From: Takakia lepidozioides
Lineage: Eukaryota; Plantae; Bryophyta
Direction: 5' to 3'
Assembly: GCA_030704615.1 (NCBI GenBank)
Contig: CM060734.1
Coordinates: forward strand, 31,124,001-31,188,000
Length of the DNA: 64,000 bases
This document shows, one piece after another, positions 429 to 26,720 of the stretch. A program made the translations under genes and the position numbers. The number at the start of each line of letters is the position of its first letter. Position 1 is the first letter of the stretch. The notes below the pieces were generated by a model, which did no database searches, was not told the DNA's origin, and saw nothing but the letters and a program-made list of their open reading frames with translations.

Positions 429-1340
429 CTAGTCGTCACTGTCCGATGACAAGGAATGTGATGTTGTGGTCTGATTTGCACTGCCAATACGGAAAGCTTG
501 CGACCGTGATCTCGTGGTCAATGAGCGGCCCAATGACATGTGATCAATTCTGGCCTGCATCCGCCTACTTCGCGGCGAAAGTTGACTTTCTTCTTCACTC
601 TCACGACGTGACGGAGGTGGATCGACAACAAGTGCTCGGGCTACATGCAAATCGACAACGAGGCCGTCCACATTCGGCAATAGTGCCCCCGAAACACAAT
701 GATAACGGTCTGTCCATAGTCGCCTCCATTGCTCTACAACTGCCTTGATGGTATTTTTAAAACTTTCTAACTACCTCTCACGGGCCCTGTCCATAATCAT
801 TGTGTCATTTCGACGATAAGCCGCCTCGTATACCTCATTCATTTGGCGTTGACATATTATAGCATCTTCCAGTTCGGACAGCAACAAATGTCTCCCAATC
901 GGTTCTCGGTCATACAATTCGTTCTCCTCCGGCACCCATAGAATTTATGGGAGCCGGATAAACCTGGACCTTTTCTGACTCCAATGCCCTCCCAGATTGC
1001 GGAAAAACTGCTGTCTCTCCCACCAATCAGGAATGTCTCCCGCAAGTATGGTTATCTCCCAGTTAGATGTGACCCAGAAATATTGGAGATCTTTGACGTA
1101 TGTCGAATTTCCGGCATGTATGCCATGCATCTCTTTGTCTGCATCCCATACCAAGTTCTTGCCCCAATGCAAACAATTCAGAAATGTGAATGGTAGCCCA
1201 TCCAATGGGAGGTTGTGTCGATTGTATTCAAAACCTACGGGCATCCGATCCTCCAAGCCCACCAACTCATAGAAACGACAATGGATTGGTGTACGGCATT
1301 CTGGGCAAGCGTTCATCCGCAAACTCTTGGTAAGTTCCTC
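429..1340 (-). pseudogene. Degraded unknown gene, probably transposon-borne, with a RING-like CPxCR motif
   Basis: Minus-strand ORF pieces (ACPECRTPIHC..., LWVPEENELYDREPIGRHLLLSELEDA..., ...SHSLSSDSDD*) join only through frameshifts or stops. They lie downstream of a triplicated TATA-containing module. No family recognised. Confidence 0.3.
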
Positions 1341-1611
1341 TAGACTATGTCCGTGACATCACCCCCTCCTCTAGCGCCGAGTTCCTCGAGGAGCGGTAAA
1401 ATCTTGGACTTGCTTAAGATCGCGGCAAAAAATACCTCTCACCCAACCAATGGCCTCCTTCTCCACGTGACTACGTGTCGTGGAATAATGAAATGTCACG
1501 CATACAGAAGTTGTGTGGAGAGGAAATGAGGGGAGAATGAGCCTCCCTTGGCTTATACGCCCCTTCCCCCACCTCATTCCTCGGGCCACGCGCAAGGCAA
1601 ATCTTCTAGAA

Positions 1612-2800
1612 GCAACCGCCCACTTGGCGGTCGCTCTATTTTCCGAAAAATAAAATAAAAACGACCGCCAGAACTGGCGGTCGCTCCATTTTCTGAAAAT
1701 AAAATAAAGAAGCGACCGCCAGCATTGCCGGTCGCTACATTTACAGGGACATTAAGAATTAAAGCGACCGCCAGTATTGGCGGTCGCTTCATTTCGAATT
1801 TTTTTGAAATAAAATCGTCATTTATAAAACTAAAATAATTACAGCGACCGCCAGTAATGCTCCATTTTCAACAAAATTTTAATAAAAGTGACCGCCACTA
1901 ATGGCGGTCGCTGCATTTACAAAAAAAAACACATTCGAAGGTATGTACCAGGGGCTGGGCACTGGGAAAATTGGGTGTGGTTTGGAAAAAATTTGGCATC
2001 ACGAGTAAGAGGAAAATGGAGCGACCACCATTACGACGACCGCCCGTAATGGTGGTCGCTCAATTTTCCTCCAAAAAACAAAAAAACGACCGCCAGTAAT
2101 GACGGTCGCTGCATTTTTATAAATAACAATTACAGCGACCGCCAGCAATGGCGGTCGCTGCATTTTCTAAAAAAAAAACTTCAAGCGACCGCCAGTAATG
2201 GAAGTGAGGGGAAAATGACTCGGAGCTTATATGCCCCCCCGCCTCATTCCTCGCTCCACGCGCAGGGCAGACCTCGTAGAAGCGACCGCCACCTTGGCGG
2301 TCGCTCTATTTCGCAAAAAATAAAATAAAAGCGACCTCCAGTAATGGCGGTCGCTGCATTTACAACAAAAAAAAAACTTCAAGCGACCGCCGGTAATGGA
2401 AGTAAGGGGAGAATTTGTCCGAGCTTATATGCCCCCCCCCCCCCGGCGCCTCACTCCTCGCTCCATGCGCAGGGCATACCTCGTAGAAGCGACCGCCACC
2501 TTGGCGGTCGCTCCATTTAGAATCCCAAAAAAACGATCGCAAAATATGGCGATCGATCCATTTTCCAAAATTAAAAAAACAACCGACTGGCGGTTGCTGG
2601 ATTTTCAGAAAAAATAGAAATTTAAAGCGACCACCAGTATGGGCGGTCGCTCCATTTACATAAAATATATTACGAACGACCGCCAGTTCTGGCGGTCGCT
2701 GAATTTATGAAAAAATAAAAGACGACCGCTACTACATCGTGTTTGCTGCATTTACAAAGAATAAAAAATAAATGCGATCGCCAGTGATGCCGGTCGCTGC
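1612..2800. repeat. Array of about 20 palindromic GCGACCGCCA-N4-TGGCGGTCGC units with A/T-rich spacers
   Basis: Units seen at about 1612, 1661, 1711, 1763, 1887, 2086, 2134, 2281, 2330, 2488, 2626, 2676 and 2773, plus half units; spacing about 50 bp. A ~100-bp module recurs at about 1525, 2200 and 2400. Confidence 0.9.
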
Positions 2801-2911
2801 TTTAAAATAAAAATGAATGTAGAGTTTTATCAACTGTGCCGCTACAAGAAACCTCCATGGGTAGATGGTTAGCTGGAAGCGGCAGTTGTAGCGGCACAGT
2901 TGATAAAATCA

Positions 2912-3660
2912 GGCGAGCATGACATTGAACAATGGTCTGTTTGTAACAGAACTCCAACCATCGGCATATATAGTGCTTCCATATTTTCTGATGCACTCGC
3001 CCGTGTTATCGTTAAACTTTTGGGTAAGCTCGGTCATGGCGTCTTCTAGCAATCATGTGCGGAGATTATGATAAGTCGGAGGCACGTACGTGGATCTGGA
3101 CTCCGAGGTTGCTCTAACGGCAGAAACAAATGTCGGAAGCCTTGTCACATTAAATGATATGTTGGCCTCGAAGAAAAACCGCATCAATTTTTTATCCAAC
3201 TGTTTTTTCGCAGACAAGTTAAGACCTTCCTGCATGGATTGTTGTCATAATCCTCTACTCCGTTGAAGTGTAGGGGTACAAAGAGGTGTTGAAGCAGGTG
3301 TTGCTCCGGCACAATCTACTTGTCCAAGGACACCTGAAGCCTCACAAGAGTCGCCTTAGGTACTAATCGGGGCATCCTGACGGGAAGATGGAGTGTTCTG
3401 CTCAGAGGTCATGTCTAGATCTAGAGACATTGGAATATTGCCTCCACACTGGGCAAAATGGCTTTTTACCCGCATAGATGCTTTTAAGGCATAAACCCAC
3501 CCCAACGCTCTTCACACCTCCATAGCCGAGGTGAGCGAGCAACCGATCCTTACGATAAGAAAATTTTAATCCACATAGGTTGCACTCAAGACTACCAGTG
3601 GTACTGACAATGTTCTGGATTGCCGTATACCAAGGGCTCCATTCCTCCCTCATCTTCACC
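2912..3660 (-). mobile_element. hAT transposase remnant (BED zinc finger plus DUF659-type region), truncated and frameshifted
   Basis: ECNLCGLKFSYRKDRLLAHL (BED finger); FFFEANISFNV...PPTYHNLRT; KYGSTIYADGWSSVTNRPLFNV (first catalytic D, DGW motif). Stops and frameshifts lie between the blocks. Confidence 0.85.
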
Positions 3661-4941: not shown

Positions 4942-7781
4942 GCCCTCTAACTTTCGTTACTTGTTTAGGCGCCATTGCGCAGAGATTTTGGGTTGGGTAG
5001 ATTGCAAGGAGGAAGGAGACCCCATTGGATTCAGCGCAGAGGTAAACGACATTTTGAGGCTCGAGGTTTGGCATGACTTCCAGGCCTCTTATGCCAGCCA
5101 CGATGTGGCTCAAACAGCTGGCCAGGGAGAGAGGTAATCGTACTGAATCCTCTTTTGATTTCAGGAGTGAGGAGATGGGCAATTTGGCCTACTCTTTGCG
5201 CAACTCTCAAAATCCTATATGTGATCCTGTTGGTCACTCCCAAACTATGGAGGACATGGGGATTTTTGGATCCACAGTGAAAAACCCAGTGGCCGAGCTG
5301 CACTTTCAGGATGTGGCATCATCCAGCAATGCCCACGAATTTGGATCATATGGCATTGTGGTAGACAAGACATGAGACATCCTGATTGGTACAGAGAATT
5401 ATACTGTCTCTTTTTTTGGTGTCTTTGGAGTTCATGTGGTGTTGTCACAGTCGGGCAGTTGCAGGGTACGGTGGACCAAAAGAGGCAGATTTTTCCTCCA
5501 TGAAAGTCCATATAGGTACCTCAAATTGAGGGAATTTATCCAAATATTTAATTTTAGATGATAGATATGATATTTAGTAAAACGTCCCACCCCAAATATG
5601 CTAAAAAAATTTTATTAGAGATTTTAGTATTTAATTCTGAAAAAATAGAAAATCATTATTTATTTCTAATAATTAGAGATTTTTGAATTTATTCCATGTA
5701 TCACTTTGCACCTCTAGATTATGGGTTTTTACACCTTTTTAGTAATGATGATATCCCAAAAGCCTCTAAATGAGGATGATGTACATTAGTCCATACCTCT
5801 CATTCCTTGATGTTTTTAATCCATACAAAAGTGCATTTGGGTAGCTTTAAAAAATGGCAGGCTCCAGTCCTTATATGGCCTTTCATTTCCTCTCTTTATT
5901 CCGTATGGGGCCCGCTTCCAAGCCTCAATGTGGAGCTGCTCCTTAACTACAACAAGAGGTCTAAATCTAGGGCCTGTTCATGCCTAGTCTTTGAGACTAT
6001 CTGGGTAGTATCCTCTGGCAGTTTTGGAAAGCTAGATGCAATTGGACTCTGGAAGGTTCTAATGCTACTGATCTACTCTTCTTACTAGGGTCTTTTTGGA
6101 CCTTACCATAGCTGCTAAGTTGGCTTGGAAAAAAGCGTCTGCAGATATCACCAAAGCTCCGGAACGCCAACAAGCAATCCTCCACAAATTCGGTTCTACC
6201 TGGGGGAGAAGGGGAATCATCTGCTCCTGCTCTGGTCCAGATGTCTGCAAGTGGCCAAGGCAGATCCCTCCTCAGTGGAGGGGCAAGCGAACCCTCCTCT
6301 TCCGCTTCCCCGGAATTTGACAAGTCAAATATTAACTGGAAGCACGTTAGGCCCTCCACGAAAACAAGGCTCTCCTACTTAAGATAGACCTGCTTCTTCC
6401 TTATCGACCTCATTGGCTTCTCAACATCTCGCATCTCCATTTCAGAGTTCAATAGTTCTTTGGTCTTTTTAGGCTAAGGTTCACATTTTAGTCTGGTGGG
6501 TGATTGCAGCCTACAGTGTCCATTTTTTGACGTAACTACGTCATTTTTCCTGTACATAGTTTGTTGGTTTTGATCTACAATCTTATATTTCTATGAAATT
6601 TATTAAAAGGGACTCACAACATTGTACCTATCTACATGTAGTATCTACCTTCTGAGACCTGCCGCCAAAACCGTTATCTCTAGAAGTAATGGATTTTATG
6701 AAAAGTCCATAAGCTTTTGTTACAGTCCATACAAAACTTGTTATGGACTCATTATATGTTAGATTTTGTAACATAATTGGATTAGGGGACTTGGCCCTCC
6801 CTTGCTATTATGATAAAGAATCTAGTGTGAGAGTTTTGTAACATTTTTACTCGTCAAACTAAATTTTATGTATTTTATCAACCTACCAATAACAGCCATT
6901 TTCATAAAGTCCTTTACAATATGAAAACCAAAACACCCCATGAACTGTCTTCATTAAATACAACCATTTATTATAGATGAAGGGTGGGCCAAGGTCAAAT
7001 TTTAAAAAACATGTACTTTTGTGATTATGGTCAAGTTTGGATTACGTCACGTGTGACACGTGACGGCATATATCCTCCATAATATCTTTCTTTTCCTCAT
7101 TTGAAATGACAGTATCCCAACAATAGACGTTCCACATGATATAATGCAAGTGAATCCATGTTTTGGTGTTTTTTCACGATTTAAAAAAAAAAAATCTTAT
7201 GTACTTTTATGTAGGCCACATCTTCAACTTTTCGGTCCACTCTTCGTTGCAACTAGCCTGGTACTCATAAACCTAGGCATTGCTCTAGGTTGATTATTCC
7301 TAAGCAGACACCTGATCGTGAATACACCCTCAGGACCTTGCTTGTTCCATTTAGCTATGTTTTTCCGTTTAGCTATGCTACTTGTCACTGTTCTCCGGAG
7401 AATCCATCACGCTTGTCGTGTGTGTGGGCCTTATGGCGGCCTTGTGCCAATTGGGGTTTTAATTTTTTCCCCCTCAAATAATCCATATTAAAACGTCTCC
7501 AGGGCCACTGTTCCCTGTTCTCTCTCAAAAAATTTAAAAAAAAAATGGCACCCCTAATGTGTTTTCGCTATTACTTAGGTGTATATGGTGTTTTTTTAGT
7601 CCATATGGTTTTTCATGTGTAACACTGCAGTCCATAAATTCAACTTTAAGAGTCCATAGCTCTTTCATAGATGATCATTTTTACAATAATTTTTTTGGAG
7701 TATGTCTCTACTGTAGTTACAAATCTTAGACCGTATAAACTTGTATGAAATATTGAGTTGTGATTTTACTATAAAAGGTAC

Positions 7782-9300
7782 CATGAGGGGAAGTAGACGA
7801 TAGTAAATCAGATTCTGATTATGACTATAATCCAGTCTAAGACGATGACCTTGTTGACATTGACAATCCTGACTTCATGGACTATTGTGTGGACACGGGG
7901 AATCCACAACGTGAGGTTGGATTATATGATTTGCTGCCCAATTGGGAGCAGTGGGGTCCTGCTGAGTTGTTTGGCATTGATGACATGTGGAACTCCTCTG
8001 CTACTAAATTGCCAGACATTACATGGTTAGGTGGGGAGTTGGGTCCTCATTTGCCTTTTAGAGATTCAGCAAATCTAGTTGATTTTTTCAATTTGTTTTG
8101 GCCACTGTCAGTCATGCGCCGAATTTGCAGCATGCCAGGACAGAAAACGTGAATGGAAACCTGAAAAGAGGTAGATGGTGGTACCCTATCACCGTCCGTG
8201 AATTGAAGGCTTGGCTTGCTGTTCACATCCACATGGGAATAAAAAAAATTCCTGACTAGATTGTATTGGAAAGCCAACAATGTCTTCTTCAATTGCCCTC
8301 CCATCATGCGCATTATGTCCCGCAACTGATGGGAGGCAATTCTGAGGTGCCTCCACCTTGTTGACAATAGGGATGTATGCACTATTGACACCGACCCTGC
8401 TTTTGATAAGTTAGGTAAAACCAGGTGGTTGCTAGATGCACTAAATGGTTTGTATGCCACGTACATGAGCCCCGAGCAGAATTTGACTGTGGATGCAAAT
8501 GGTGAAGTATAAGGGCAAGTATGCCCGAATCCAGCAATACCTGAGCAAGAAGCCCGTGAAGTGGGGTCTGAAGGTGTGGTGTTTGTGTGGTGCATCTTCT
8601 AAATATGTTCAGAAGTTAGAGGCCCGAGTGGGCTTTCCTACGTGCCTTGATTTGGGGAAGAAGGGTGAGAGAACCTGTAGGCTGGACTATCGTGTTCACA
8701 TAAGTGGCAAAGTAGCCGCTATTGCCTGGATGGATGTCAAGTTGGTGACCATGATTTTCACTGCCATTTCCCTTGTCGGTCCTGATTGCTTCATACAAAG
8801 ATGGCACAAACGGGCAAGATGTGCTGTGCCTACCTCCTCTATTGTGGTTCATTACCAGCAGCATATGCGGGGAGTGGATGTTCAGGATCAGCTGCGGGGA
8901 TCCTACTCTGTTCAGACCTGGGACCATAAATGGTGGCACCGCTTGTACTTTCATGGAGTTGACACTTCTTTGGTGAATGCTTACATATTGTACCTGGGTT
9001 TTATGAGAGGAAAGGGCCGCACTCCTCTTAGCCACATGCTTTTCAATTTGGAGGTTGCAAAGGGACTAATTGTGGAGTGGGTTCTCCCAGGAGAACAGTG
9101 ATGCCAGAGGCAGATGTGCCCAACCTGGGGTCCGTGCATTTCTCTGTAGGAGGAGGAAGTGTGTTGCTTGCAGTATGCATCAAAGGTATTTTTGTCATGC
9201 ATGTGGAGATGTTTTATGTGCCTTGGACGATGCTTTGTCAAGAGCCATAGCCTTCTATAATTATAGGTACTTCTATGTTCAGTTTTTGATATGGTTGATT
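7782..9300 (+). pseudogene. piggyBac transposase pseudogene (DDE_Tnp_1_7 / PGBD-like)
   Basis: YLSKKPVKWGLKVWCLC; YQQHMRGVDVQDQLRGSY; KWWHRLYFHGVDTSLVNAYILY; C-terminal Cys-rich RRKCVAC...FCHAC...LC. Frameshift at the first catalytic D (~8495); the DNFF second-D region is missing. Confidence 0.9.
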
Positions 9301-9759
9301 TCCTACTGCAGAAACGTGGAGACCTTTGATGCCAAAGAGGAGGTATCCTCCTTATGACACTTTTTCTACGTAGTGGTGTTCCGTCTTTTTTTGAACACAG
9401 TGGTGTGTTTGGGGGTTGGTTTGTTGTTGGTAGCCATGAAACGTTTGTACTGAGGATCCAGCCGTAGAGAGTCACTTGACAGTCCAAGGAGAGGTATGAT
9501 TTTGTGGTTGTGCAGTTTTGGGGTTCACTGGGTCCTAACCTGGATGGTTTGTTTGCTACTCCAGCTTTTTGCCTTAGTGTCCATGTAGATTGAAGGTACG
9601 TTTTCTTTGCTGCAGCAATTTTGTGTTTCAATTAGGACTGAGTCTATTTTCTTTGTGTCTAGTGTAATTAGGTGGTAGTCCCCCAGTCAAGCGGGAGTGT
9701 GCACAAGGGTGGAGACTCCTTCCCTCCCTACTAGGGAGGAGTCTCCCCCCTCGTGTTCA

Positions 9760-10441
9760 TGTGTGAGTTGCCAATTGGGGCAAGTTAGTGGGTTCAACTC
9801 CCTCTCACACAATTCGGCGTGTAAATGTGGGTTCATCTCTGGTTTTTCTGAGTCTGAAAAGATGCTAGTGCTGGTCACATGTTGGTCTTTCTTTGTGTGA
9901 GTTGCCAGTTGGGGCAGGCCACTGGGTTCAATTCCCACTCACACAATGGAATTCTCTGTGTTCAGGTTTGTATGCTGTCTCATTGTGTTGGAATTTTGCT
10001 GGCCTTCAAGCTTGTGTGGCTGCCTCATCGTCTCTGAATTTTGGGAGTGTGCAGGTTGTGTGGAACTTGGCCAAAAGCCTTCAGCATAGGCTGCCAGTTG
10101 GGGCAGCTCCATGGGTTCAAATCCCACCCATGCTTAGCTACTAAGGGTGGGTGATGAAGGTTTGTATGCTGCCCCATTGTCTCTGAATTTTGCTGGCCTT
10201 CAAGCTTGTGTGGAACTTGGCCACAAGCATTCAGCATGTGCTACCAGTTGGGGCAGCTCCGTGGGTTCAAATCCCACCCATGCTTGGCCACTAACTTCTA
10301 AGGATGGGTGATGAAGATTTGTATGCTGCCCCACTGTCTCTAAATTTTGCTGGCCTTCAAGCTTGTGTGGAACTTGGTCATAAGCATTCAGCATGGGCTG
10401 CCAGCTGGGGCAGCTCTGTGGGTTCAAATCCCACCCATGGG
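9760..10441 (+). ncRNA. Tandem array of five 52-nt tRNA-like elements lacking an anticodon arm (putative)
   Basis: Units at 9760-9811, 9894-9945, 10083-10134, 10233-10284 and 10390-10441. Each has a 7-bp acceptor-like stem, a D-like arm with an AGTTGG-type loop, a 3-nt linker and a T arm (consensus GTGGG-TTCAAAT-CCCAC). Expression is not shown. Confidence 0.6.
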
Positions 10442-11030
10442 TGGGAGATGAAGGAGTTGGTTGCTGTGCTTGATTCTGGCTTTTGCCTTCATGTTGTTGG
10501 ACTCCATTTTGTGTGCCTTAGGCTTGTGTGGAACTTGGCCAAAAGAATGAGAGCAGATGGTGGAAGCTGCTGTGCACATGAATGGCACTACTAGGCCGTC
10601 CTTCTGCTTCAGCAAAACTGCTGCTGCCTATGCAATTTGACCCCCCTTACTTTGACCAGCTGTAAATCAAAAAATATGAATCCAATTTCTGCATTCTATG
10701 GCTCATCAGAATGCCAATGTGCTGGACAACACCTATGAGCAGGATGAGATCCTGCAGATTTCACCCCGTCATTGAAAATTGCAATCAAATTTCCCTTATT
10801 GTTTAGGGAGGGGGCCCAAAAAATGGGCTCCACACTCAACGGTGGTGTTTCTCTGATTTTTGCCTGATTGGCCTGGAAATGTACTGGTGTTTGCAAGGGG
10901 TAGGTACGAGAATAATGTCTTGTCAATTTTCCCAAAAACTTTTTTTTCGCTGAGATATGCTCATTTTTCTAAGCTGGGGTCCATTTTTTTTCAAAAACTC
11001 AACATTGGGCACTGGGCGCTTAAGGGTTAA

Positions 11031-11309
11031 GCATCGGCTCGGCCACCTACTAACCGACCCAAAAGACATAAACAATGAGATATGGATCCAAGCGTCATCA
11101 TCCTACACACCCGCTGTTGCAAACTGCCTACATCGCAACCAACACAATACCAACCGCATGTGCCAAGTTAAATACTACCCATGGCATGATATAGACGGCT
11201 TCTCATTGGATAAACGTGGCTCCCCAACAAACTGTATTCTTGACCTATTCACAACTCACGTCTATGAATCCTGCCTTAGAGCTCTCTCTAATTCTAAAGC
11301 CCCGGGCCC
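11031..11309 (+). mobile_element. Non-LTR retrotransposon fragment (region just before the RT domain)
   Basis: ...YESCLRALSNSKAPGP matches the KAPGPD motif preceding LINE RT; cut off at the (GA)n run. Confidence 0.6.
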
Positions 11310-11800
11310 AGAGAGAGAGAGAAGACTCCGGCCAAAGCCGGCGTAACTAAGAGCCAGTTCGCCTCACGGCTACTGCTCCCTTTCGGGGTGGGCCCTCTCT
11401 AAAAAGGTGTCCATAGGACACTAGGAGCCTAGAGGAGCATTTTAGATCCAGTGGCACAAGTGACATTTTCCAATGTTCAGGAGGAATTCAAAGTGATTAA
11501 TATGTTTCTAGAACAACAAGCCAAGGTACCGTGGGTACCTGGGGTACCTAGGATACCCTAGGTACCCCGGGAGCCAGAGAAGGGTCAGATTCGAGTTTAC
11601 GTTTGTTAGTAATAATGGCTGTGAGGGAGCGTAGGGCAGTGAGGTGTATTGCTTTGAAACATTTATGAATGGAGAAGATAGTGAGTTTAAAGTTGGTGTG
11701 TAGTGCATCAATACTGGCGTTATGAATGCTGCCTCTAGTGCCAGCCGTGATAACCGTCAAAGGACCAGTGACCCAGCCCTTATGTCGAAGCGCAAGGATA
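11310..11800 (-). mobile_element. 5'-truncated LINE 3' end with (TC)n tail
   Basis: C-terminal ORF piece TVITAGTRGSIH...IHLTALRSLTAIITNKRKLE, stop at 11548, then a 3' UTR and (TC)n at 11310-11321. Confidence 0.5.
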
Positions 11801-11890
11801 AGTGACGCATATTTTAGCCGTTTGTCTAACGTTGAGTCAGCGGGGTATCGATCATGGCAGTTGTGAACTCAATAAAGTGGATGGTAAGGT

Positions 11891-12620
11891 CACTACAACA
11901 GATTTCGGCTTTTACGTCTGCTATTTTCCAGTCGTATCAGCCTTTTACGACTGCATGAGTGCCCAGTCAGATAAACCCAGTCAGTTGTTACAAATGAGTC
12001 GTAAGCGCCATAGAGTCGTATCTGCCAGTCGTGGAGCTCACTGTTGACGTGGCAACGGGGACGCCTACTCATAGTCATTGATAAGACTGTAGTAAATGAC
12101 TGCGAATCCATGTCAGCTTCACGTGGAATGGAAGGGATATGCCACGTGTCACGTCCAAGGGAAGGCGACAGGGTCATCATGACTGGCATATACGACTTCC
12201 GCGGATTAACCCCAGGACAGCACGTGGAGAATACCGGGAACGACACGTGGCATGATAGGGTGACTGGAGATGACACGTGGCATGACAATATGGAGCGGGA
12301 GGGTCTTTCGTGACTGACATATATGACTTTGGACGTTTAATCCCAGGTTCACACGTGGAGTCAAATTACGCAGGATGGGGGTGGGGTGGTCGTTATGACT
12401 GGAACATAGGACTTCCATGGCGCACTCTGGATACTGCACGTGGCACGAGTATGGGCAAACACGAGGGGTGAAAGTGGCACGTGGCGGAGGCTCTGTGGAT
12501 GGGAGGTAGTCGTGTACATGACCGTAGCATTGAAACACGAAAGCACCATTGAAAGCATACGAAAACACCATTGAAACATGAAAGCACATTTGAAATTGGA
12601 ACATCGATTCAAATACAACG
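11891..12620 (+). mobile_element. CACTA (EnSpm) element left end with subterminal repeats
   Basis: Starts CACTACAACAGATTTCGGCTTTTACGTCTG; AGTCGT/ACGACT subterminal repeats; a near-identical terminus occurs at 28326. Right TIR not found. Confidence 0.7.
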
Positions 12621-24862: not shown

Positions 24863-26720
24863 GTGGTTAGTTGGTCTTAGGTAGTGCAGAAGAAGAAGCT
24901 TGGAGGGCTGGGTGTGATCAACCCTCAGGTTCAGATTATGGCACTATTGGCCAAATGGGTTCCTCGTATTTTCACTCACATTTCTTCTCCCTGGAGCATA
25001 ATTGTTAGAAACCATATCATGGATTATATCCCTTCCAGCTCTCATCCCTGGCCACCTTCTCTTAAATGGATAGTGCAGGGTTACCCTTCCAGATCTGTCA
25101 AAGTGGGCTCAAGGGCGTGGCAATCGATCTGGGATGTCTGGCTTTGTATGAGGCCCTACCTGGTGCAAAGAATTACAGCCCTTGCTGAAGAGGCACTTAG
25201 GCAACCACTTTTCCTCAATTATAACTCGGTTTGAAAACGGTGTCCCTCTCCCGAAAGACTCTGTCACCCAGGACCTTCCATCCCGTGCAGCCACAGACGC
25301 TTGGAACTCGATTGTTGATGAAATTCCATCTTCCTGGATCGTCTTTTAACATCTTTGCCAAGTAACCAAGATCATCTCCATGCCTGGTATGGTTCCATGA
25401 GAACACAACCTCATTTTGCTTTTTTGGCGTTGTTTCGACAGAACGCAGTCTTACAGGGGTGGAGATTTAATGTGGGACCCTTTGGCTCTCTCCACTCTCC
25501 TACCAATACAGAGGCCAAACAAGAAGAGCTCACTCCCATCATAATCTATTGTGCGATCTCTGGGCAAATCAATCCGTTGCTCCTTGTCAATATTCAACAT
25601 TATTGTAACTCCTTCTGCCGGTTCTTGAAAGCTCCCCTTAGTTCTCTTCAATTTGACCCCGGTAAATGGGAGTGGATGACAAAAAAACATGATCCTTTTT
25701 TTGCCTATTCGATAAAGAAATGGTACTCCCTGCTTATCCTCCAGAACTCCCTGGATGCCAAACTTTCCCATAAATGGAGGCACTTGTTCGCTGAGCCTAT
25801 TGCCTGGAAACCGATTTGGAATGATGTTTGGAAGAAATAAAGGGCTGCTAAGATCTGTGGTTTTCTATGGAGGCTTGTGAATAGAATCCTCCATGTTACT
25901 CACCTCTCTGCTGATTCCCTCTCCATGTGTCAACTTTGTTCTTCAACGGTTCTGAAAACTCTGGAGCACTTGTTCTGCAATTGTCCTGTTGCCTCCTTCA
26001 TTTGGGATAAAGTTGCTTGTTTCTATGCCTGCTGGGGCAATGATTTTCCTCGTACCCCATCTGTTATCCTGCTTAATTACTACAATGGTTCGTTGTGGTC
26101 TTCATGTCCAATCTGGGCTGCTCTTCGTGCTCATATTTTATGGCAATTATGGAAAACTTGGTGTTCATTTTTGTTTGATGATGTTATGCCCACAGCCAGA
26201 GTCATCTTTTTTAGAGCTCACTCGGACTTATAGTCTGAAGCTCGCAAAGTGTGGGAGTGCCTATGTGCAGCCTTTTACAGATGGAATGAAGAAAAGCGAC
26301 AACAATCACTTGCGCAATTGGATGCTTCATGGGGAAAGGGAGGCGTCTTCTGCATCAGGGTTGCCGAGCTTCGAATTGCATGGTGCAACACCCTCCCTGC
26401 ATGTTGGGAGTTCCGTTAGTGCAAGGCTTCTCCCTGCTGAAGGTGAAGAGTAGAAGGTAAACTGGCGTTATCAGCGCCGTAGTTACATGAAGACTAAATC
26501 TAGAGTTCACCTCTCCTTTGAGCCATCCCTTAAGCACTGATAGGCTTTGCATCTTGGATCCCTGTAGCTCTCTGATAGGACCAGCCTCTTGAACTCGCAG
26601 TATCTCCTTGTTGGTCTTATGGCTTTCTAGCAAGGTTATTTTTTCCTTGCCTGTCTCATTTCTCTGTTATAATAATATTTTTTAGGGCTTCTATACCTTT
26701 TATTATATTTATATATATAT
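24862..26720 (+). mobile_element. 5'-truncated L1/Tx1-type LINE (post-RT region and zf-RVT), degraded
   Basis: VVSWS*VVQKKKLGGLGVINP...ALLAKW; CQLCSSTVLKTLEHLFCNC (CCHC); multiple stops; AT-rich tail. Confidence 0.85.

Follow-up and report, generated by a model that had tools for sequence, protein, structure and literature searches.

The window analysed here is a 64-kb stretch of the genome of Takakia lepidozioides (Bryophyta; contig CM060734.1, positions 31,124,001 to 31,188,000), and all coordinates given below without a locus prefix refer to it. Between 7488 and 11030 it holds a decayed piggyBac transposon, which carries an array of five short tRNA-like units between its transposase and its right end (Table 1). 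The carrier is recognizable as piggyBac by a DDE_Tnp_1_7 transposase, a TTAA target site and CCC...GGG termini, the left end being degenerate. Its right end is AGGGTTAA at 11023-11030, a subterminal motif composed of an A run and TGGCACCCC is mirrored near 7540 and 10985, and the depth of the family in X1, a DNA run of the same organism, begins in the left-end bin near 7488. The hairpin in front of the first unit is very stable (-39.9 kcal/mol, z -6.1), and none of 200 shuffled sequences folds as well.

Each unit in the window is 52 nt long and consists of a 7-bp closing stem, a D-like hairpin, a short linker and a T arm (GGGTTCAAnTCCC). The D-like hairpin follows the pattern (G)YTGCC/GGCAR(C) with a 6-nt loop of A(G/A)(T/C)TGG, and it is separated from the T arm by a linker of 3 to 5 nt, the anticodon arm being absent. 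The T arm combines a 4- to 5-bp stem with a 7-nt loop, TTCAA(A/T/C)T, and leads directly into the 3' strand of the closing stem. At the sequence level, TGCCARYTGGGGCA is common to all five units (with one mismatch in unit 4) and is followed, after 7 nt, by GGGTTCAANTCCC. Across the 64 kb, GGGTTCAANTCCC occurs 5 times and TGCCARYTGGGGCA 6 times, against 0.01 and 0.14 occurrences expected by chance; bar one chance D-like match at 26026, the unit motifs are confined to the array.

TABLE 1 Features of the Takakia piggyBac element and units detected in related loci
Feature	Position	Strand	Description
Left end (approximate)	7488-7560	+	TTAA, degenerate terminal repeat, subterminal A8-10TGGCACCCC mirrored at right end
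Transposase remnant	7790-9360	+	Broken by stops and frameshifts; DDE_Tnp_1_7 open reading frame (ORF) and Cys-rich piece
DDE_Tnp_1_7 ORF	8493-9101	+	E 4.5e-18, 66 bits (cut-off 22.4)
Cys-rich C-terminal piece	9070-9357	+	Downstream portion of transposase remnant
Hairpin	9697-9758	+	~24 bp, G-rich 5' arm, C-rich 3' arm; ends 4-5 nt before unit 1
Unit 1, type A	9760-9811	+	Closing stem TGTGTGA/TCACACA, T loop TTCAACT, 73.6 bits
Spacer between units 1 and 2	9812-9893	+	82 nt; T5 run at 9843-9847; z -0.25
Unit 2, type A	9894-9945	+	T loop TTCAATT, closing stem TGTGTGA/TCACACA
Extra segment	9946-10635	+	690 bp not in common family form; spacer-plus-unit repeats, units 3-5
Unit 3, type B	10083-10134	+	Closing stem AGCATAG/CCATGCT; A at 10088 private
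Unit 4, type B	10233-10284	+	Single D-stem pair broken (TACC)
Unit 5, type B	10390-10441	+	Final two closing pairs lost at repeat end
Right subterminal motif and right end	10976-11030	+	...CTTAAGGG at 11019-11030, then TTAA
L001 unit	L001:2133-2182	gene strand	R1, 17.7 bits, E 0.007 over 206 kb, full length
L052 unit	L052:1273-1324	transposase strand	R2, 18.5 bits, E 0.002; identical to L053:1639-1690
L015 unit	L015:1277-1323		R2, weak, 13.3 bits, E ~0.15

An initial annotation of this DNA had described five 52-nt units on the transposase strand between transposase and right end, closing stems of two different sequences that both pair, a T-A to C-G swap in the D-like stem and T loops of TTCAACT, TTCAATT and TTCAAAT; all of these features are present as claimed. 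Type A units (1 and 2) and type B units (3 to 5; consensus closing stem AGCATGG/CCATGCT) differ on both sides at 4 of the 7 closing pairs. The swap is seen at pair 9-24, which is T-A in unit 1, T.G in unit 2 and C-G in units 3 to 5. Over the five units, 90.6% of the alignment cells pair, compared to 31 to 55% when the partners are slid against each other, and RNAalifold predicted a near-identical structure de novo.

Recurrence of the fold in related piggyBac elements

Do other piggyBac transposons carry the same structure, as the initial annotation suggested checking? A fragment of the transposase searched against representative proteins gave 4180 relatives, and 56 loci around the closest of these were fetched. 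Two covariance models were applied, R1 built from the five window units only and R2 including the unit of L001 as well. The same fold was found downstream of the transposase and on its strand in L001 and in L052/L053, and weakly in L015/L013, where L013 holds the L015 unit shortened by a deletion; all of these loci are metagenome contigs. The L001 unit lies ~210 nt after the ORF of P0001, the best-scoring and closest transposase relative. All of its helices differ in sequence from those of the window units and yet pair (TCCAATT/GATTGGA, CCAC/GTGG and TCAGG/CCTGG), while its loops, ATTATGG and TTCAATT, are retained. It was also the sole match outside the window with 7 of 7 closing pairs and 5 of 5 T-stem pairs in a rule-based structural scan. 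The units of the relatives lie inside their elements, since AAGGGTTAA right ends, which are present in 20 or more related loci, follow further downstream.

Joint alignment of eight units shows how far the stems have diverged. It contains five different closing stems and four different T stems, the T loop being constant, as is the GG in the D region. In this alignment, which was fitted to the covariance model, 92.2% of cells pair (31 to 46% in slid controls), 14 of 17 pairs have changed on both sides, and neither the covariation score nor the paired fraction was reached in any of 500 shuffles. The anticodon-less, tRNA-like layout with covarying stems proposed at the outset is thereby borne out twice, by compensatory changes between the unit types of the window and by those in at least two divergent piggyBac lineages. 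The lineages that bear units are distant from each other: their transposases share only about 50% identity, and L001 and the window element have significant DNA similarity solely over 122 bp of coding sequence (70%); outside the unit, the 3' regions of these two share nothing above an 11-nt T-loop word. Because pairing is kept in such distant relatives despite differing letters, the fold is probably useful to the transposon, and we consider it likely that the units are a selected structured RNA element. Judged from their sequences, they are probably mimics of the top half of a tRNA that belong to one clade of plant (moss-type) piggyBac elements.

Other loci gave no unit at E values up to 1 to 10 (L002-L012, L014, L016-L051 and L054-L056), some of these contigs being too short to inform. 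A 12.3-bit match at L052:8424-8469, with an unpaired D stem and 7 kb from the transposase, was judged a chance hit. AT-rich candidates upstream of the L003-L008 transposases in a relaxed structural scan look like chance as well; at the loose cut-off, shuffled sequence gives 1 to 4 matches per 250 kb. L003-L008 (JGI, Logan contigs) represent a distant relative found in many samples, with an intact 1164-aa transposase (P0009), a conserved 128-aa ORF ~600 nt downstream, and no unit. Two contigs of 0.25 to 0.9 Mb, L047 and L048 (ENA ERZ25073694), are plant-like and include a pentatricopeptide repeat (PPR) gene; their decayed piggyBac copies have AAGGGTTAA ends and no unit. Thus, the presence of the cassette varies by host genome or subfamily.

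A role of the units as DNA, either as subterminal binding sites of the transposase or as cruciforms for transposition, would suit their right subterminal location and their short palindromes. In insect piggyBac, the C-terminal Cys-rich domain binds palindromic internal repeats. This reading is nevertheless highly improbable: no matching array exists at the left end, the resemblance of the conserved loops to tRNA D and T loops holds in a single orientation, and the sequence of the closing stem is free to change within one element, which would be intolerable for a sequence-specific protein.

Unit number in the genomic family

To place the window copy within its family, we used Logan contigs of DNA runs from the same organism aligned to 7488-11030; such contigs show neither where molecules start or end nor their strand. 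The family is highly repeated, with a summed contig depth of ~1000 to 3000. Its common form joins 9945 to 10636 with one T between, at a depth of 954 in X1 and of 6.6 in X5, a plant-metagenome run. Because a high-depth family contig makes this joint, the common cassette has two units and is composed of the stable hairpin, unit 1, the 82-nt spacer and unit 2, followed directly by TTTTGACCCCCC (TTTT). The five-unit array of the initial annotation is therefore a true feature of the window copy and not the norm of the family. Further joints (9782>9924, 9812>10213 and 10422>10117) also begin or end in or beside units, indicating that unit number varies by recombination between units. The family consensus keeps the units. 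Several letters that break pairs represent private decay of the window copy; for example, the A at 10088, which disrupts a closing pair of unit 3, is G in family contigs, and the G-C pair is restored.

Units 3 to 5 lie within a 157-bp tandem repeat (10056-10439). Short tandem repeats also occur downstream of the unit in L001 (L001:2230-2325, with a period of GATGAATTGTGTTTTT) and in L052 (L052:1440-1700, ~180-bp repeats), and repeat expansion beside the unit is therefore a recurring trait. Within the type B repeats of the window (10127-10160, 10277-10312 and 10431-10452), the 3' strand of each unit, CCCACCCAT, could pair with its complement, ATGGGTGGG, which follows at a distance of a few to 25 nt. 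Behind unit 5, they make up a perfect palindrome, and such pairing would rival the tRNA-like fold in these repeats.

Unit-bearing contigs were also found in X6 and X7, two runs whose label as RNA is a guess. Some show shorter variants of the hairpin followed by TTCA and the unit, others have single units flanked by sequence unlike the window element, and several continue into such unlike sequence. These contigs are compatible with expression and with diverged subfamilies alike and establish neither.

The variable unit number raises another question. Could the cassette be a neutral relic, that is, an anticodon-armless fragment of a tRNA or of a short interspersed nuclear element (SINE), one that entered the 3' region of an ancestral piggyBac a single time, was copied along with its host and was multiplied by unequal recombination, all without serving a function? 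Several observations would agree with such an origin: copies vary in unit number through joints inside or at the edges of units, the repeat that holds units 3 to 5 is an ordinary tandem repeat, the units of the dead window copy decay about as fast as its spacers, and the cassette is missing from many relatives. What makes a relic improbable in our view is that pairing has been kept while the stem letters turned over, with double changes at 14 of the 17 pairs, and that the unit is still recognizable where the 3' regions have become unalignable and the transposases have diverged to about half identity.

tRNA likeness and the RNA polymerase III alternative

The window units are tRNA-like in architecture and are not tRNA genes, because ARAGORN finds none in the 64 kb and the Rfam tRNA models yield only tRNA-Sec matches of 18 to 20 bits against a threshold of 47 (E 1.3 to 4.5). 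These sub-threshold matches align on the acceptor and T arm alone, and the same models give no match at all for L001, L015 and L053. A stack of 7 and 5 bp from acceptor and T arm, with nothing between the 3' strands, is found in the five window units, L001 and L052; the same units share the T loop TTCAA(A/T/C)T and the GG that ends the D-like loop. The L015 unit deviates, having a GTCAATT T loop and no D stem. A search for the pattern TGCCARYTGGGGCA-N7-GGGTTCAANTCCC in metagenome, prokaryote-genome and viral collections gave no matches, suggesting that the exact unit sequence is limited to the window family and is not a microbial tRNA-like element. No additional copies were recovered when a spurious ORF spanning the cassette was used as the query.

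The main rival to a cleavage signal, raised in the initial annotation in the form of TFIIIC barrier sites, is that each unit works as a small RNA polymerase III (Pol III) gene, or at least as a site for TFIIIC/TFIIIB, whose internal promoter would be a B box plus part of an A box. A gene of this kind would produce a tRNA-like RNA of ~55 to 90 nt ending at a T run, possibly acting in trans; alternatively, Pol III factors sitting on the units could hold off silencing or block transcription that reads through. The promoter elements speak for it in part. The B box is perfect (GGTTCAAnTCC, 11 of 11 positions), and the half of the A box represented by A14-G15...G18-G19 is present, although the A box matches at positions 14-19 only and positions 8-11 mismatch. 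T runs follow the units in L052 (T16 at 11 nt), in L015 (T7 at 2 nt) and in the window family, where TTTT comes directly after unit 2 of the common form and T5 comes 32 nt after unit 1; L001, however, has only TTT behind its unit, and T4 runs are common in AT-rich spacers, so that part of this signal may be chance. Likewise, TATA-like stretches lie 20 to 45 nt upstream of the units in L052 and L015, but the sequence upstream is G-rich or a GC hairpin rather than the AT-rich/CAA context of plant tRNA genes. Covariation in the stems is equally expected of a Pol III RNA that needs folding and processing, whereas binding of TFIIIC to DNA alone would not require paired closing stems. Overall, we regard a Pol III function as unlikely, and it would not exclude cleavage of the same units.

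tRNA-derived SINE heads and tDNA or B-box (extra-TFIIIC, ETC) insulators can bind TFIIIC and act as chromatin barriers. The units resemble these in having an internal B box, part of an A box and downstream T runs. They differ in being 52 nt long without an anticodon region, a SINE body or a tail, and in their distribution, since 5 of 5 matches in the window lie inside the piggyBac and none outside, although contigs of X6 and X7 also contain single units with flanks unlike the window element. The covariation of the closing stem further separates them from ETC sites, as DNA binding does not explain it.

A possible role in processing the transposase transcript

How might a selected tRNA-like fold serve the transposon? 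Of the readings considered, cleavage of the units by RNase P and RNase Z, as proposed in the initial annotation, is the one we favor, though tentatively. The transposase transcript would run through the cassette, so that the forward strand is read as RNA, and the D-like GG of each unit would dock on the TTC of its T loop. RNase P (PRORP in plants) would cut at the 5' edge of the first unit and leave an mRNA with the very stable hairpin or, in the relatives, a G-rich tract at its 3' end; such an end could protect an mRNA devoid of a poly(A) tail, as in MALAT1 and NEAT1. RNase Z would cut at the 3' edge, and small tRNA-like RNAs and spacers would be released as by-products. The geometry of the unit, with its stack of 7 and 5 bp, G18-G19 and T54-T55-C56, comprises features recognized by PRORP and by RNA-based RNase P. 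Both kinds of RNase P gauge how far the acceptor 5' end lies from the G19-C56 elbow, and for them the anticodon arm is dispensable. Among the substrates of plant PRORPs are tRNA-like structures at the ends of mitochondrial mRNAs and a nuclear precursor of a tRNA and a small nucleolar RNA (snoRNA), and Physcomitrium has PRORP paralogs in the nucleus and in organelles (PMC10941002).

The sequence in front of the unit has a counterpart in the relatives. A G-rich tract, TGGGGGG(A)GTAGG, stands immediately upstream of the unit at L001:2116-2132, L052:1261-1272 and L015:1259-1276, and L001 and L052 additionally share ~35 nt further upstream of it. In the window family, a C run pairs with the G run, which supplies the 5' arm of the hairpin at 9697-9758. 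Possible roles of the G-rich tract are those of a 3'-end cap, a G-quadruplex or a site for a protein.

The closest parallel in arrangement is provided by mascRNA and menRNA of the vertebrate MALAT1 and NEAT1 transcripts. There, too, a tRNA-like fold with a T loop of the GGTTCAAATCC type sits in a long transcript right after a structured protective element. RNase P cleavage at the 5' edge is reported to make the mature 3' end of MALAT1 and NEAT1, and RNase Z to free the small RNA (PMC8457004; PMC12941219). The differences are considerable. The host here is a plant DNA transposon instead of a long noncoding RNA (lncRNA), the anticodon arm is absent instead of reduced, and there are 2 to 5 units instead of one. 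The triple helix with U-rich and A-rich motifs is replaced by a G-rich tract in the relatives and, upstream of unit 1, by a plain GC-rich hairpin without such motifs. The Rfam mascRNA-menRNA family has no match within 8000-12000 at E values up to 10.

Plant mitochondrial t-elements are likewise partial tRNA mimics of acceptor and T arm, and they act as RNase P and RNase Z sites that define mRNA ends (PMC1920247; PMC10941002). They share this design with the window units but are organellar, single and located in host genes, while the units are repeated in a nuclear transposon and have a D-like hairpin. In plant nuclear tRNA-snoRNA dicistronic genes, in the tRNA-miRNA units of murine gammaherpesvirus 68 (MHV68) and in synthetic polycistronic tRNA-guide arrays, a tRNA or tRNA-like module is the RNase P/Z punctuation that frees neighboring RNAs. 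A plant tRNA-snoRNA precursor is processed by PRORP (PMC10941002). All of these involve full tRNAs or cloverleaf mimics with a defined cargo RNA, in contrast to the spacers here, in which no conserved cargo was found.

Several points weigh against a selected cleavage signal and must be set beside its support. The cross-lineage evidence comes from three or four lineages found by an iterative search with roughly calibrated E values; of their units, that of L015 is a weak match whose best fold is a simple long hairpin, and that of L052 adopts an alternative structure at minimum energy. About 45 related piggyBac loci are without the unit, many of them with complete 3' ends reaching the right terminus, indicating that the cassette is an accessory of one clade and is not needed for transposition. 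The numbers of G.U and A.C pairs (3 versus 3) leave the strand undecided, and the T runs behind the units (T16, T7 and TTTT) suit a Pol III gene and would be superfluous for cleavage. Plant mRNAs that lack poly(A) are good substrates of RNA-dependent RNA polymerase, and a transposase mRNA without a tail might be a liability. Finally, the spacers are not conserved between lineages and have no structure beyond chance, which weakens the functional spacer RNAs that the initial annotation had also envisaged. It seems somewhat doubtful that a bryophyte piggyBac clade has evolved a complete MALAT1-like 3'-end system of its own, with poly(A)-independent, exonuclease-resistant mRNA together with small tRNA-like RNAs.

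The spacers have a bearing on one more alternative, in which the units are punctuation for spacer RNAs and the cargo is the spacers or the hairpin, not the mRNA end. Models for such a design would be a natural array of the tRNA-guide type, a tRNA-snoRNA arrangement, or a tRNA-hairpin precursor like the tRNA-miRNA-encoded RNAs (TMERs) of MHV68. The common form with its unit-spacer-unit order, and the long hairpin adjoining unit 1, would both be compatible with this. The spacers after units 3 and 4 (10148-10204 and 10300-10360) contain a C/D-box-like GTGATGA ... CTGA, which together with a faint match to Rfam snoU82P (14.4 bits, E 2.5) could hint at a cargo; a C/D snoRNA was rejected as unsupported in view of this E value and because the GTGATGA/CTGA boxes are not maintained across the three type B repeats, one count placing them in a single repeat. 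Structured spacers were rejected too, their folding being no better than that of shuffled sequence (z -0.25 to +1.3). Moreover, L052 and L015 yielded no second unit, and the L001 sequence stops ~140 nt beyond its unit. Together with the lack of spacer conservation, these results make a cargo function decidedly improbable.

Returning to the units as a selected tRNA mimic, what would they add to known biology? In the literature, we found no description of a tRNA-like element in piggyBac or in another DNA transposon. tRNA-like structures as such are known; what is new is their repetition, without an anticodon arm, in the 3' region of a plant DNA transposon. To our knowledge, tRNA-like structures that borrow tRNA-processing enzymes are limited to two vertebrate lncRNAs, plant mitochondrial mRNAs, some viruses and tRNA-snoRNA genes. 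If true, the present case would extend this use of the tRNA-processing machinery to a DNA transposon, and in plants to a nuclear protein-coding transcript, for the first time in either setting. If the mimic is indeed selected, mobile elements would have one more, novel means of exploiting host RNA or Pol III machinery; the transposon could profit by having its mRNA made or protected, or by being shielded itself from silencing. piggyBac is a leading gene-transfer vector, and a compact natural 52-nt module that sets RNA ends or insulates an insert would be useful in piggyBac vectors; it would also parallel, in nature, the tRNA-guide arrays engineered for plant genome editing. The minimal, anticodon-less design would show which features of a tRNA are kept when only elbow and acceptor recognition matters.

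One further structure lies outside the transposon. With sub-threshold Rfam matches (tfoR at 22 bits and mir-607) that are probably due to chance, a near-perfect GC-rich palindrome, CCTGGGGTACCTAGG/CCTAGGTACCCCGGG, occupies 11475-11579 just beyond the right end, within a repetitive stretch of the GGTACC type.

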